Origin: Macrostomum lignano | Lineage: Eukaryota | NCBI GenBank assembly: GCA_002269645.1 | Contig: NIVC01000250.1 | Span: forward strand, 1-64,000 | Direction of reading: 5' to 3' | DNA: 64,000 nucleotides | Shown here: in pieces, positions 37,514 to 44,643 of the stretch | How the letters are laid out: each line of letters opens with the position of its first letter | Position numbering within the stretch: position 1 is the stretch's first letter | The notes under the pieces: model-generated | Told to the model about the DNA's origin: nothing | What the model saw: the letters and a program-made list of their open reading frames with translations, nothing else | The model's database searches: none | Translations under genes and position numbers: made by a program

Positions 37514-37587
37514 AAAAAGCTGGTCAAGTGAGTGCCAATGGGGTATTTTGAGACCAATTCAGTTAACCCATCGACTCCGGACCAGCC
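37514..37587 (-). ncRNA. Y RNA-like gene, copy D (GGCUGGUCCG type)
   Basis: GGCUGGUCCGGAGUCGAUGGGUUAACUGAAUUGGUCUCAAAAUACCCCAUUGGCACUCACUUGACCAGC-U5. First 10 nt equal the vertebrate Y1/Y3/Y4 5' end as I recall it. TATA-like box at 37611-37619. Confidence 0.9.
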
Positions 37588-37676
37588 CAACAGTTGGGGT
37601 GTCCGACTGCCTATTTAAGCCTGAACAATGCTGCAAGCTAAGCCTAATTCTCTGCGCTGTATGCTTTTGTGGTGAA

Positions 37677-39011
37677 GACGGTCTCTGACTGTTTTTACCC
37701 TGGCTGCCTCTCTGGCGGCATTTCTCGGGTTGTGCGCAATCCAATCTCGGGTTGTGCGCAATCCAATCTCGGGTTGTGCGCAATCCAATCTCGGGTTGTG
37801 CGCAATCCAATCTCGGGTTGTGCGCAATCCAATCTCGGGTTGTGCGCAATCCAATCTCGGGTTGTGCGCAATCCAATCTCGGGTTGTGCGCAATCCAATC
37901 TCGGGTTGTGCGCTCTCGCTAGCCCAATTTTCTAAGGGTCCGCCCCGGGGGCTGTGCCTATTCTAAAATTACCCTATTGATTTCATTCCAATCAATTTGG
38001 CCCTCGGCCTTGGGTTAGGGGGTGTACCTGGAGTGAGTTGGAGATCTGGACTGCAGTGTGGCTAGAACGGGACTTGAGCCCCCCGGTCGCACCCGCCCTG
38101 CAGGAAAGACGACCATTCACAAAGGTGTACGGTAGAGCCCAGTCGATGCCAGCCCTGAGGCTGGCCCCGGGTTAGGGTTCAGGTGCTCCTCCCATTCTGC
38201 CATTTCTTTGTGTTTTTATCTGGGCTGGCATCCCAGTGTTTTTGTTCCTTTGTGTTTTACCCGGCCATTAGTTTGCCATTCCAATTCTTGGAGTTATGAG
38301 CTCTGCCCTACCTGCCCGGTCCATCTTTCTTGCCTGCCTTGGTCCATCTGCTGGCTCCTCTGGTTGTCTCCCTGCCTATTGTGTCTCGGCTCTCATCTCT
38401 GACAGTGGATTGGAGTCCTGGGTTGGATGTTCGTCCCGAATCGGGGAAAACCGGCTGAGTCCGGTTTCCTCTTGCCCCTTGTGCCCCTCAGCTCCGCCCC
38501 CTTGGCCTGGCCTCCAATATACATGTAGAGCTGGATAGGTGATACCCTTGTGGCTTGCAGCCCTGTAGGTAGTCGCTATATCCTGCCTGATAGGAGACTC
38601 GCCCTCGGAAACAAGCCTTCCAGACTCACTCCAATATTAAGCCATTTCCGAGACTTCGGGGTTTCCCCGCTCTCGGACCGCTTCTCAGTAGTAACCCAAG
38701 CATTTTTCATTCCAATTCTTTTTTGGCGCACTCCTGGGATTTGTCTGCTGGGTGGTGGCCTGGGTGGACTCGGTCCTTGCACGGTCCCATATGATTCCAC
38801 AAATATTGGGTTGGCGGTGTCTTAGTCCATAAGGCTTGGGTTAGTAGCTCCAATGCTCCATGCTCTCCCCAGAGTCCTGAGCTCTGGTTCCAATAGTGGC
38901 CTCTCGGGCTTAAAGCCCCTGGTAGTATAACCCACAGCAAGATCCATGCGGCAGATCGAGCCCCCTAGGGCTGATCCGCGGGCAGCGCTTCTCCTCCGTT
39001 TTAACAACAAC
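37677..39011. mobile_element. Unclassified dispersed repeat ending in TTTAACAACAAC; contains a 22-bp tandem array
   Basis: 38555-39010 is homologous to 44910-45317. Both copies encode related minus-strand peptides (MES.GTV.GPSPP.PP…RASLLSG). Confidence 0.55.
37724..37912. repeat. 22-bp repeat TCTCGGGTTGTGCGCAATCCAA (about 8.5 perfect copies)
   Basis: Direct reading. Confidence 0.96.
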
Positions 39012-39089
39012 AAAGAGAAAAATTTAGTTACTGTAGGCATATTATGTAGAAAGTGACAGAAATAATTAAAATTAATGAAAATTCTGCAT

Positions 39090-39170
39090 AAAAAATTCGG
39101 CTGTCAAGTGAGTGTCGATGGGGTATAATTCGTTTGAGTAAGTTTGTTAACCCATCGACTCCGGACCGCC
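39090..39170 (-). ncRNA. Y RNA-like gene, copy E (near-identical to C)
   Basis: Same sequence as C with one extra C in the 3' arm. Part of the 36965-37676 / 39012-39730 duplication. Confidence 0.85.
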
Positions 39171-39562
39171 TAGTTGAAATTGCGACTGAACAACTATTTA
39201 ACCTCTTCAATGCGCATCTCAATGCAATCCGGCAAATTTCTCTCGTAAATAATTCACACATACGCTATTAATCTACTCTCAGTAGAAATGATAAACTATG
39301 CCAAGCTAAAAAAATTAACTAATGAAAGTTAAATTTACAATAGAAAAATTTCTTTGAAAGCCTGCTGACTTTTATCTTTGATAAAAATTGTTAATATAAA
39401 CGAATCTATCTACGAGCTAAATTTCTAATTCTTGGATCATCTAATGTTTTTGTCTGACTATTTTAACAAATAATCCTTGCAGCGGGCACTTTTTAAAATA
39501 CTTCCTTTTCTAAAGGCCAGAAATTAAACAAAAAAAATTGAAAACTGTTTAATTTAACCGGC

Positions 39563-41356: not shown

Positions 41357-42775
41357 TTGCTTGAGCTTTGGCGTCTGAACTGCTATTTAAGCTCTACAGA
41401 CAGGCTTTGATGCAATGAAAAGAATCTTACCACTAAAATGCACACATCATGCTCCTATCATCTACTTCAAGTAGAAATACACATTTTTCATTCCAGATTT
41501 CGCAGAAAAACTACATTTAGAAACTATACTTGGCGTCTGAATAATTCTGATCAGATGCAATCTGAAATTTATAAAAGTGATGTAACCACGTCTTGGTCGC
41601 GGGATGAATTGGGGAAATTTTTCGAAATGTCCCCGATCCCCTTTGACCGAATGGGCAGAGCTGTCGAGACTGGGCCGGGTCTCCCTGAACTCCCGCTCTG
41701 ATTGCGACCCCTGCTGTCTCTGTTCCGTCTCCCACGCAGCCACACTTGCCTTTCTGGAGCCCCCCTTTTTTGTGCACCTCGCCTGCTCCCGCATTTCTCA
41801 TGCGCCTCAGACCATTTATCATGTATTTCTCGTGTTTTTCCCGTCTTTTTATCATGTTCTTGCACGGTTTTCTTGCGCTGTCCCCTCCTCGTCCCGTGCC
41901 TACTTAGAATATCGCTTGTGCAGATCGTCACCCCATCTCCCTTTAGGATCCCAAATGGTGACGCAAGGCTCCTGACCCCTCCCTCACCCCGATGACTCAT
42001 CACCCACCTCTTGCGCAACCTTTCTCATGCTATTGATCACTTCCCAAGATTTCTCATGTGACAGCCTCCCCTCCTCCGCTTCCATTTTTCTTGTTTTTGA
42101 TTTTTTTGTTCTTCTTTTCGCACCTAATTAGCACCTTTTTTCTCAATGTTTGCTTTTCCATTTTTCTCGATTCTCCCCAATTATCCTCGATTTCCATTTC
42201 CTTTATTCTCGATCTGATTCCCATTGTTCTCAATGTTGCTTGCGCAACACTTCTTCGACCTCCCGCTGGGCTTATTTTCCCATCAATCCCCGTCCGGATT
42301 GCGCATGTTTCCCATTTCTCATGTTGCTATGCCGTTCTTATATTTCTCATAATGACTCATTCTGACGTCATCTTCCCGGCGGCCAATCAGAGTAAGGGAG
42401 TCATGGAAACGACCTTGGAGTATTTAGAGGACTATTTAAGGAAGTGATTTCGGCGTGACAACCTGCAAAGTTTTGGCCTTTGGTCTTCTGCAAGACCTTC
42501 GCCCAGCTTGGCTTCTCGTTCTATCTTTGGACTTGCCGTCGTCAGACGCCGGTCTGAACCCCCCCCATTCGTCTATAGGACGAACCTCTGCCAGCCCGCG
42601 GTCTGATACCGCCTAGATTCCTCAGCTCCCCAAGCGAGCTTATCTACCGGCCCGCGGTCCGATACCGCCCAGCATCCTCAGCATCGCCTGAGCTACATCA
42701 GTGCCTCGTCGCTTCAGCGCATCGCCGCTTCACTACCTGCCTGTCCGCAGCCAACAGCCGCCCTCGGTCACTCCA

Positions 42776-43001
42776 TCGCTCTCTCTCTCTCTCTCTCTCT
42801 CTCGCTCTCTCTCTCTCTCTCTCTCTCTCTCTCTCTCTCTCTCTCTCTCTCTCTCTCTCTCTCTCTCTCTCTCTCTCTCTCTCTCTCTCTCTCTCTCTCT
42901 CTCTCTCTCTCTCTCTCTCTCTCTCTCTCTCTCTCTCTCTCTCTCTCTCTCTCTCTCTCTCTCTCTCTCTCTCTCTCTCTCTCTCTCTCTCTGTGTGTGT
43001 G
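42776..43001. repeat. (CT)n microsatellite followed by (GT)n
   Basis: Direct reading. Confidence 0.98.
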
Positions 43002-44160
43002 CAGCTGCCGTTGAGTTCCTGTACTGATTTTTGCTCTAATTGCCTTTGCTTATCCGGGGTCGGCTTATTTCCCATTGCTTGATTAGAGAGCTGAGCCAAT
43101 TATGTACCTTGCTGTATTTTACTCACTAGTGAAGCCGCCTAATTGCCTGTTAATTTCGCCTAAGGGCCTAATTATAAACAATTACTAAAACAACTCATTT
43201 TTCACACCTTCACCATCATTTCACCCATGGCTTGCTGAGCCTTTCTCCCTGGGTGGCAAAGCATAAGGAAGTTTGGGTAAGCTAATGGCATCTCCCCGTG
43301 CAAAGCCCGCCTGTGTGTGCGTGCTGCGGGTCCGTGTGTGCGTGCAGTAGAGGTAATTAGCGTGTCTTGGCACAGAATGGCAGCAGGAAGGTTGCAACAC
43401 CCTGCTCACGCGTCCCTTCGCCCTGAGCAATCTAAACTATAGCTGGTACATGTTCATCTCGCACTACTCTTAATAATTGAAGCCGCAAGTCCGCCTCGCT
43501 CACAGCCTCAAAGGATCTCCTGCTGAGAAATCCTCCAGATTGATCCCAGAGTTCCCGAGTATGCCCCAAGCAGAGTCCCTGTACTCGGCTGCATGTGTCT
43601 CCCCTGTTAGCCTAAACCCCCTGGTAACCAATCCAGGCGGGGCTCTAGCCTCGAAAGGTCTGGTCGTAAGATCCAGGTGCGCCAGTTCACATAGAGTGGT
43701 GGCAGCCATTCGGTCATGCCATGACCGAGTGACCAACTATTGCACCTTGGCTACAGGTGGGGTCCATGTGGGTCCTTGGCCCTCTGGTCACAAAGCGCTA
43801 CCAAAGCTATCAATCATGTGGGCGGGACAGTCTGGTGCTGGAGGTCCGTCAGGTCATTGCCCGGTCATAGGCAGCCTACGGTCATTGCCCCCTATGGTCA
43901 TACGCCCCCCTTCCCGTGGAGCAGACGGTCATCAAGGGCAGTTACATCAAAAGGCCAACATCATATTTTATTTCTCATAAACTGCTTCATAATTATTACA
44001 GTAAATAATTCTACTGTAACAATTCCACTATAAAGCATAAACTAATTTTACTTTCACTAAAATGAAACAATGCAAATTTAAGTTACTAAAAATCTTTATT
44101 AATGTTAGACAAATTATGTAAACAGTGATAGCAATTTTAAGCTCAATGAAAATTCTGAAT

Positions 44161-44251
44161 AAAAATTTCGGCTGTCAATTTCAAGTGTCGATGGGATGGA
44201 ATTCATGGCTGTGTAAGCTCGTTATAGCTAACCCTTCGACTCCGGACCGCC
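44161..44251 (-). ncRNA. Y RNA-like gene, copy H (shortened promoter spacing)
   Basis: GGCGGUCCGGAGUCGAAGGGUUAGC…UCCCAUCGACACUUGAAAUUGACAGCCGAAA-U5. TATA remnant only about 13 nt upstream. Confidence 0.7.
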
Positions 44252-44568
44252 GAACTGCAACTGCTGTTTAAACTCCTCAATGCGCAGCTCATGCAATCCG
44301 GCCAATTTCTCCAATAAATAATTCTACACATACGCTATTAATTTACTTACAGTAGAAAATGGCAAACTATGCGTAGAACATTTTGAAAGAATGTAACATT
44401 GAAAAAATTAACTAAAAATTGTTTGAAAATCTGCTGGTCAGTGTTGGACTTTTGATCTTGTCAAGGATCAAGTAGTCCTTGTCATTCACCTATTCATGTA
44501 CATTTACATGTTGAATTCTCGTTTCCTAAAGCCCAGAAATATTTGAAAACTTTTGGATTAAAGCCAGC

Positions 44569-44643
44569 AAAAAAGCTGGTCAAGTGAGTGCCAATGGGGT
44601 ATTTTGAGAGCAATTCAGTTAACCCATCGACTCCGGACCAGCC
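44569..44643 (-). ncRNA. Y RNA-like gene, copy I (GGCUGGUCCG type; 1 loop substitution vs D)
   Basis: GGCUGGUCCGGAGUCGAUGGGUUAACUGAAUUGCUCUCAAAAUACCCCAUUGGCACUCACUUGACCAGC-U6. TATA-like box at about 44667-44675. Confidence 0.9.

Follow-up and report, generated by a model that had tools for sequence, protein, structure and literature searches.

A probable cluster of Y RNA/stem-bulge RNA family genes in the flatworm Macrostomum lignano

Y RNAs and stem-bulge RNAs (sbRNAs) are on record from vertebrates and nematodes, and also from amphioxus and a small number of insects (PMC4726728), and the sbRNAs are treated as the nematode homologues of the vertebrate Y RNAs (PMC4726728; PMC4450293). An externally promoted RNA polymerase III layout has been described for both. 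A 2009 homology search of schistosome genomes (Schistosoma) did not find Y RNAs, and our search of the literature on flatworms and Lophotrochozoa, which did not cover every journal, turned up no later report of a Y RNA or sbRNA. Here we analyze a window of 64,000 nucleotides (positions 1-64000 of contig NIVC01000250.1, assembly GCA_002269645.1) from Macrostomum lignano, a free-living flatworm (Platyhelminthes, Spiralia). The window holds nine small genes that in all likelihood form a tandemly duplicated cluster of the Y RNA/sbRNA family, as defined by the features given in PMC4450293 and PMC4726728. These are apparently the first Y/sbRNA genes described from a flatworm, and they are clustered as in nematodes and vertebrates.

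The 13-mer GGTCCGGAGTCGA has nine exact occurrences in the window, all on the minus strand, against a chance expectation of 0.75 matches when up to 2 mismatches are allowed. Nine Y-like genes, lettered A to I, lie on that same strand within ~16 kb, A standing alone at 28177-28255 and the other eight falling within 36543-44643, with RNA bodies 74-103 nt long. A covariance model built from the nine copies (R1) found no tenth copy when run on the 64 kb. The first-pass annotation had placed the element at 37514-44643, a span that takes in D to I and leaves A, B and C outside; its description of D, F and I as nearly invariant is borne out. D (37514-37587) and F (39563-39636) are identical 74-mers of the GGCUGGUCCG type, and I (44569-44643, 75 nt), of the same type, differs from them by one loop base, G to C, and by one extra T that lengthens the terminator. 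On sequence grounds D is the form nearest the vertebrate Y RNAs, and I is an older paralogue of D/F with a near-unchanged sequence. C (37043-37122, 80 nt) and G (41254-41356, 103 nt) are of the GGCGGUCCG type; E (39090-39170, 81 nt) is a recent duplicate of C, from which it differs by a single extra C where the loop meets the stem; and A (79 nt), which also begins with GGCGGUCCG, ends in a T8 terminator. With B (36543-36637, 95 nt) and H (44161-44251, 91 nt) set aside as probable pseudogenes, there are seven apparently intact copies, with D, F and I in one type, C, E and G in the second, and A standing apart as divergent. A near-duplicate of the locus, L001, is present on a second M. lignano contig, NIVC01000118.1 (363 kb); it is ~99% identical to the window, from which it differs by 15 substitutions in 9.4 kb, and holds counterparts of E, F, G, H and I.

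The family assignment is carried in the first place by two Rfam models, each with a gathering score of 38 bits. RF01656 (ceN72-3_ceN74-2) represents the nematode sbRNAs and was built from nematode sequences only, and its gathering score is reached by six of the nine Macrostomum copies (I, 45.4 bits; D and F, 44.5; C, 42.9; E, 42.6; G, 38.9). H (31.3 bits) and A (30.4) fall below it, A scoring 78 bits with R1, and no match was reported for B. The vertebrate Y_RNA model, RF00019, aligned end to end with D, F and I, the shared blocks being GGCUGGUCCG.AG...(A/G)UGGGUUA and CCCA.UG...ACUUGAC.AGC.UUUU, and the search reported no match for the other copies. In addition, the 20-nt GGUCCGGAGUCGAUGGGUUA of the Macrostomum 5' arm is identical to the nematode sbRNA 'Cn2' (...UCGGUCCGGAGUCGAUGGGUUAUC...), as given in supplement S1 of PMC5745555. 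The label Y-like that the first pass had given these genes is thus upheld, by six copies over the RF01656 threshold and by the full-length, though sub-threshold, alignment of D/F/I with the Y_RNA model. Since a routine Rfam scan would flag six of the copies, the cluster is best regarded as an extension of a known family, not a surprise.

The predicted fold has the two modules expected of the family. The lower stem, of 7-8 bp, reads (G)GC(U)GGUC/GAC..GC(C) and is closed by GGUCCG...CUUGAC with an unpaired C; none of the nine copies departs from GGUCCGG or GAC, and the column-9 C is unpaired in Rfam, in RNAalifold and in most minimum-free-energy folds. The upper stem, of 9 bp, has G-C clamps around a central UG-CA and reads GUCGAUGGG/CCCAU(C/U)G(A/G)C in C, D, E, F and I. 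In C it is entirely Watson-Crick (GUCGAUGGG/CCCAUCGAC). The exceptions are G, where the top clamp is C-G, A, with an A x G top pair, H, where UG has become AG, and B, in which the stem is disrupted. The stems quoted in the first pass were read correctly, both the upper (GAUGGG/CCCAUC in C/E; GAUGGC/GCCAUC in G; CCCAUUGGC, with two wobbles, in D/F/I) and the lower (GGCUGGUC/GACCAGC in D; GGCGGUC/GACUGCC in G; GGCGGUC/GACUGUC in A). The upper-stem motif is AUG-CAU, not the GUG-CAC of vertebrates, a variant allowed by the sbRNA definition A/GUG-CAC/U. The loop opens with UUAAC in A, C, D, E, F, G and I, with UUAGC in H and with UUAAAC in B. The sequence of D/F/I is compatible with a Ro60 site, for which a conserved 7-bp helix, one bulged C and a bulge in the opposing strand are described (PMC4726728): GCUGGUC pairs with GACCAGC, the C is unpaired, GG faces UU or CU, and the CAC/CACU opposite is unpaired, the register of the middle helix being ambiguous here.

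Several measures bear on these pairings. Run unguided, RNAalifold arrives at both the lower stem and the 9-bp upper stem, with the C left unpaired. When 19 pairs are defined from the Rfam alignment, standard pairs fill 92.5% of cells, and sliding the 3' partners by 1-3 columns gives 15-53%. Every model pair forms in D/F/I (19/19) and G (18/18); C/E form 17 of 18, the single faulty pair being a G x A in the lower stem. Of the same 18, A and H form 16 each and B forms 13. Minimum free energies fall below those of dinucleotide shuffles, with z from -2.2 to -3.9 for A, C, D, E, G and I (A, -2.2; D, to which F is identical, -3.0; G, -3.8; C, -3.9), and all intact copies keep both the lower-stem and the upper-stem module. 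A probably folds like the rest of the family, as modeled, while being divergent. B (z = 0.04) and H (z = -0.5) fold no better than dinucleotide shuffles. B carries two lower-stem mismatches, a disrupted upper stem and CUCGAC in place of CUUGAC. H, a probable pseudogene of the C/E lineage, has an A x A mismatch where the central UG of the upper stem became AG, a promoter box changed to TTAAACAG and a 12-nt deletion between box and start; its duplicate in L001, H', carries further lesions. The earlier statement that A, B, C, E, G and H all keep the stems was therefore overstated, with 5 of 18 pairs broken in B and two, including the central UG-CA, in H.

The genes also share flanking elements. 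An exact TATA-like box, TTAAATAG, stands at -31 in C (37146-37153), D (37611-37618), E (39194-39201), F (39660-39667) and I (44667-44674) and at -34 in B (36664-36671) and G (41383-41390), all on the minus strand. The window contains 14 exact TTAAATAG sites where 3.2 would be expected, and 7 of them are at these fixed positions. Variant boxes on the same strand occur in A (ATAAATAG, 28284-28291, at -36) and H (TTAAACAG, 44264-44271, at -20). An oligo-T of 5-8 closes each of the nine copies, and T4 is absent from their interiors. Taken together, box, oligo-T and the lack of internal T4 are laid out, as far as sequence can tell, like a gene that RNA polymerase III transcribes from an external (type 3-like) promoter. 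Farther upstream, a 13-nt palindrome, CTACTNNNAGTAG, starts 104-153 nt from the genes, counted on the minus strand. It has nine exact sites in the window against 0.18 expected, and is a candidate distal promoter element. It is exact upstream of I (44784-44796), B (36738-36750), C (37225-37237), E (39273-39285) and G (41462-41474) and has one mismatch upstream of A (28370-28382), F (39776-39788) and H (44343-44355). D is without it because its upstream region is truncated at about -90 by an insertion at 37677-38980, between D and E. The 77-80% identity between 38531-38929 and 44890-45261 shows the involvement of a dispersed repeat family in this insertion, which also includes a perfect 22-bp tandem repeat (8.7 copies, 37723-37913). 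TTGCA was considered as a proximal element upstream of the box and dropped, its distance to the box varying over ~18-32 nt and the motif being missing from F, and a bacterial sigma-70/terminator scan is irrelevant to a eukaryotic polymerase III gene. The copies have their own promoters and no poly(A) tails, and thus arose by DNA duplication, not by retroposition.

Two subfamilies had been proposed at the outset. The division is clear at the 5' end, which reads GGCUGG in D/F/I and GGCGG in the others, but by flank and promoter homology the second group splits further into three lineages, C/E/H, B/G and A. The promoters of B and G are 82-85% identical, and the upstream region of A resembles that of the C type around the palindrome. 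Nor are the loops of the second group unrelated, as had been claimed: those of C/E, G and H can be aligned with one another (AACAAACUUACUCA..., ...CAUGAAUU/AAAU...), and the surplus length in G is a (GATA)5 microsatellite at 41293-41312. L001 has 7 more bases in the loop of G (...GATATTAGATAG..., at ~2900-2925), so that the length of this RNA loop differs between the two loci. The diversity of the loops owes part to decay, in B and H, and part to the microsatellite in G, and the intact loop types number three or four rather than six unrelated ones. About 45 nt on the 3' side of the terminators can be aligned among the C/E, H and G lineages (ATGCAGAATTTTCATTAATTTTAA...; 37000-37042 in C, 39045-39089 in E, 41210-41253 in G and 44115-44160 in H), while the loops have diverged more; these flanks may reflect shared ancestry or a 3' element.

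What these RNAs might do is suggested by the described members of the family. By homology, the lower stem with its unpaired C and the U tail would be bound by putative Ro60 and La orthologues, a role in initiating DNA replication would fall to the upper stem, and differing loops could give the types differing partners. The first pass had proposed for these loops a parallel with the vertebrate Y1/Y3/Y4/Y5 RNAs, in which different partners are recruited by the loops. It is possible, although we think it unlikely, that the genes are sbRNA-like only, with a replication-type role and no Ro60 partnership, and that a separate, divergent RNA resembling the C. elegans Ro60-bound RNA, CeY, binds Ro60, as in that species. 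The best model match is to the sbRNAs and not to Y_RNA, the upper stem is the same as the sbRNA consensus, and immunoprecipitates of the C. elegans protein ROP-1 hold CeY RNA and no sbRNAs (PMC4726728). D/F/I nevertheless bear the vertebrate-type Ro-site sequence GGCUGGUCCG...CUUGACCAGCUUUUU in a perfect helix, and no CeY-like gene is present for comparison. A related idea, and a speculative one to which we give little weight, is that D/F/I act as the Ro60-bound Y RNA and C/E/G, the GGCGG type with its relaxed lower stem and 2-3-nt spacer before the U tail, act as replication-type sbRNAs, a flatworm version of the C. elegans division of labor. Both types would still keep the ancestral upper stem, and the split would then be in an intermediate state. 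The replication module (upper stem plus UUA.C) would date to the bilaterian ancestor and should be required for proliferation of neoblasts, the flatworm stem cells, and CTACTNNNAGTAG would represent a new kind of distal element in the polymerase III promoters of flatworms.

The arrangement of the copies allows the RNAs to be compared with their own flanks. The cluster is made of two-gene units, each with a D-type gene followed ~390-465 bp downstream, on the minus strand, by a C-type gene. The units (C,D) and (E,F), at 36965-37676 and 39012-39730, are 97.6% identical across 719 bp, and the identity of D and F is uninformative about selection because both lie in this duplication. The unit (H,I) is older, with 77-86% identity to the other two. 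Between I and F, the RNA differs at 1 of 74 positions and the core promoter (from -47) at 2 of 47, while the upstream flank has 31 mismatches in 151 alignable positions (20.5%) and the downstream flank soon becomes unalignable; conservation of the RNA against the flank rate has a binomial P of 8e-7. H shares a duplicated unit with I, ~390 bp away, and has drifted from C/E at about the rate of its flanks; its RNA is 85% identical to theirs. The first pass was thus right that the flanks of I have clearly diverged, and its suggestion of purifying selection finds support in the comparison of I with F and none in the identity of D and F. The comparison of RNA and flank divergence that it had called for, in its within-genome form with H as the contrast, favors constraint. 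We suggest that constraint is better seen in this I-versus-F contrast, in the match to a model from another phylum and in the decay of B and H than in covariation.

Covariation itself is limited. Pairs changed on both sides number 3 of 19 across 8 distinct sequences (effective number 2.26). Pair 21-86, G-C in most copies, becomes C-G in G, which is one clean swap, whereas pairs 3-110 and 4-109, which set D/F/I against the rest, are tied to one indel (GGCUGGUC/GACCAGC vs GGCGGUC/GAC.GCC) and so represent one event. The other pairing-preserving changes are one-sided: U-A to U.G at 14-93, G-C to G.U at 16-91, and G.U at 5-108 and 3-110. Within the intact copies the 5' strand varies only at the extra U of D/F/I and at position 21 of G, the remaining variation being found in B and H; with this strand near-invariant, most of what looks like covariation is one-sided wobble on the 3' strand. 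The covariation score exceeds that of every shuffle, a result that related sequences can give without structure. The data show conservation of arm sequence at least as much as conservation of pairing. Covariation among the nematode sbRNAs is established already, and adding them to the alignment would bear on that and not on constraint in the flatworm. Compensatory change, which the first-pass annotation had taken as support for selection on structure, is real but sparse; the swap in G speaks for such selection weakly, and the argument cannot be carried by it.

A number of points weigh against the assignment or against the constraint that we read from it. The observed count of doubly changed pairs was reached by 40 of 500 shuffles and is statistically weak, and L001, being ~99% identical, is too close for measuring selection and adds no evolutionary depth. 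The Y_RNA alignments of D, F and I score 26.9-27.0 bits (27 for D), under the 38-bit gathering score. The genes are known here from sequence alone, and their 5' and 3' ends are predictions. The middle helix is short and ambiguous in register, with Rfam, RNAalifold and the minimum-free-energy fold all differing. The loop opening keeps 4 of the 5 positions of the sbRNA motif UUA(U/C)C and differs at the fourth base; in nematodes, full-length sbRNAs depended on this motif for activity in vitro and isolated upper stems did not (PMC4450293), which makes the UUAAC variant a caveat. Finally, the near-identity of I to D/F could partly reflect gene conversion.

This last point can be extended to a general alternative, in which the near-identity of I, D and F, and perhaps the invariance of the 5' arms, is upheld by ectopic gene conversion in place of purifying selection. 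Multicopy polymerase III genes are known for concerted evolution (PMC5745555), and the block conserved between F and I, from -47 to +79, is sharp-edged like a conversion tract. The same block, however, matches the functional unit, from ~16 nt upstream of the TATA-like box to just beyond the terminator. H, only ~390 bp from I, was never homogenized with C/E and decayed instead, and identity with nematode sbRNAs is inexplicable by conversion. We observed separately that the differences between H and H' are clustered: comparison of 44141-44252 with L001 5705-5828 places 5 of the 15 substitutions between the two loci, together with a 12-nt indel, within ~110 bp in or beside this pseudogene, where ~0.18 would be expected. 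The clustering could reflect ectopic exchange, which would favor the conversion alternative; when polarized against C/E, however, both copies carry derived changes, a poor fit to a single conversion event, and an origin of the difference in one such event is disfavored. A dying polymerase III gene may have undergone local hypermutation here, or ectopic exchange may have occurred more than once. On balance we consider maintenance by conversion in place of selection to be doubtful. Conversion alone would not be expected to keep I so exact while its neighbor H decays, and conversion and selection may act together.

Equally, one might ask whether all nine copies are non-functional duplicates of a Y/sbRNA gene elsewhere in the genome. 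B and H, two of the nine, are clearly degenerate, C/E have the G x A mismatch in the lower stem, and D has lost its distal upstream region to the insertion at about -90. Such a dead array would be hard to reconcile with the fact that every model pair is intact in D/F/I and G, that seven copies have intact promoter boxes and terminators, and that I has conserved its RNA and core promoter next to a flank that diverged by 20%; nor do the copies carry poly(A) tails or marks of retroposition, and they bring their own upstream promoters with them. We therefore regard it as very improbable. Least credible of all is that the cluster is contaminating nematode DNA, as the nematode-only composition of the best Rfam family might suggest, or an unrelated flatworm RNA that has converged on the family: contamination is effectively refuted by the M. 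lignano genes around the cluster on its 236-kb contig, by the ~99% identical duplicate on the second, 363-kb M. lignano contig and by the interleaving of the cluster with the minisatellites of the window, and for convergence the match, which spans both arms, the bulged C and the loop motif with E of ~1e-6, is too much for chance.

The reading of the locus as a Y RNA/sbRNA cluster is accompanied by several remnants of the same units. At 40982-41087, on the minus strand, 106 bp match the region upstream of G (41390-41495, about -35 to -140) at 95% with no gene attached, leaving a promoter-only relic with a palindrome inside it at 41054-41066. The relic is flanked by a perfect 105-bp inverted repeat (40878-40982 and 41088-41192) and looks like a foldback element, or one resembling a miniature inverted-repeat transposable element (MITE), with a captured promoter fragment. 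A further palindrome, CTACTGTAAGTAG, lies at 36189-36201 in the region 36040-36201. The sequence that follows it resembles the D-type upstream flank (ACTCTAATTT..., GAAGCAT), no Y-like gene comes after, and the region is probably, by this resemblance, the remnant of a tenth unit. Outside M. lignano, a scan of metagenomes with a pattern that left the upper stem free returned 18 loci, of which two, L004 and L014, are credible sbRNA-like genes; the other 16 are chance matches in GC-rich contigs. L004 (664-744, minus strand) and L014 (909-978, plus strand) are on metagenome contigs JAAUYA01... of ~38% GC and have a TATATAAA box near -30, then GGUCCGGAG...UGGGUUAUC...CCCAUCUCA..ACUUGACC, then a T run. 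They score 17.7-22.5 bits with the Macrostomum model and were left out of the covariation analysis.

The surroundings of the cluster are those of a repeat-rich flatworm contig. Tandem Repeats Finder returned 48 rows, with minisatellites throughout the window and an extraordinary density at 1-27000 and 54000-64000; examples are a 23-mer in 71 copies (13347-14991), a 34-mer in 64 copies (20022-22200) and a second 23-mer in 63 copies (54253-55700). Because of these minisatellites, most of the long open reading frames (ORFs) in the window are artefacts. Three coding features were identified. An exon encoding an inositol polyphosphate kinase domain lies at 25586-26068 on the minus strand. A chromodomain plus enoyl-CoA-hydratase (CDY-like) gene occupies 51316-53355 on the plus strand, its ORF being 100% identical to an M. 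lignano BOX15 protein; the 90% cluster consists of two M. lignano proteins on two contigs (BOX15_Mlig010982g1 / BOX15_Mlig028982g1). A non-LTR (long terminal repeat) retrotransposon ORF with reverse transcriptase and RNase H domains is found at 60391-62310, also on the plus strand. A protein search with the C-terminal domain of the chromodomain gene gave no match, one with the neighboring exon at 32801-33334 gave only two distant matches, on short contigs, and no tRNA genes were found in the 64-kb window. Within the cluster region we also noted a long hairpin-like inverted repeat (TTAATACCCATGCTTTAAGGGCGTTAATGGGAAAATCAGAGGG...), seen by eye, around a (GCC)8 run at 40120-40330, and a (CT)107 microsatellite at 42779-42992, inside which L001 is shorter by 28 and 22 nt at two places.

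The presence of a multi-copy Y/sbRNA set in Macrostomum would have consequences beyond this locus. It would place the family in Spiralia, and the two arms would in that case have barely changed since the ancestor of protostomes and probably since that of bilaterians. Stem cells and regeneration are studied in M. lignano as a laboratory model, so that the disputed ancestry of the role of Y RNAs in DNA replication could be tested in dividing neoblasts. The compact promoters, with candidate elements within ~155 bp of the start, might also be used to drive guide or hairpin RNAs in this animal.

The insect Y/sbRNA-like RNAs of Anopheles gambiae and Bombyx mori (PMC4726728) are reported protostome members of the family from outside the nematodes; set beside the Macrostomum genes by description only, they are single arthropod genes, in contrast to a nine-copy spiralian cluster. 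CeY, the RNA bound by Ro60/ROP-1 in C. elegans, with relatives in other Caenorhabditis, shares the lower-stem element GGUCCG and coexists with sbRNA paralogues in one genome; it has a GU-repeat loop and neither a conserved upper stem nor UUAUC, whereas all Macrostomum copies keep the sbRNA-type upper stem. With the vertebrate Y1, Y3, Y4 and Y5 RNAs (RF00019), D/F/I share the 5' GGCUGGUCCG, the 3' CUUGACCAGCUUUUU and the (A/G)UGGGUUA junction of upper stem and loop, and the two systems have in common the polymerase III layout and clustered paralogues with conserved stems and differing loops. They differ in that Macrostomum has AUG-CAU for GUG-CAC, shorter loops that are not pyrimidine-rich and a score of 27 bits where the curated threshold is 38, and in that its second type is missing the U of GGCUGG and carries 2-3 nt of spacer ahead of the U tail.

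The closest counterparts are the nematode sbRNAs (RF01656; C. elegans CeN71-77 and CeN133-135). These belong to another phylum, and their loops open with UUA(U/C)C where Macrostomum has UUAAC. The Macrostomum loops are also far shorter, with 74-103 nt in total against a 130-position model. Upstream, the nematode genes have a 'GTATA' element (UM3 = PSEB + GTATA) where Macrostomum has the box TTAAATAG; the Macrostomum palindrome has no described counterpart among them, PSEB not having entered the comparison. Against these differences stand the same lower stem with a single unpaired C, the same 9-bp upper stem and the same loop-opening pentanucleotide position, and likewise a TATA-like upstream box, an oligo-T terminator and an arrangement in tandem arrays (PMC5745555). 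Some of the nematode RNAs have a 5' arm identical to GGUCCGGAGUCGAUGGGUUA, and for the 3' arm CCCAUCGACAC.ACUUGAC the agreement is near-complete.

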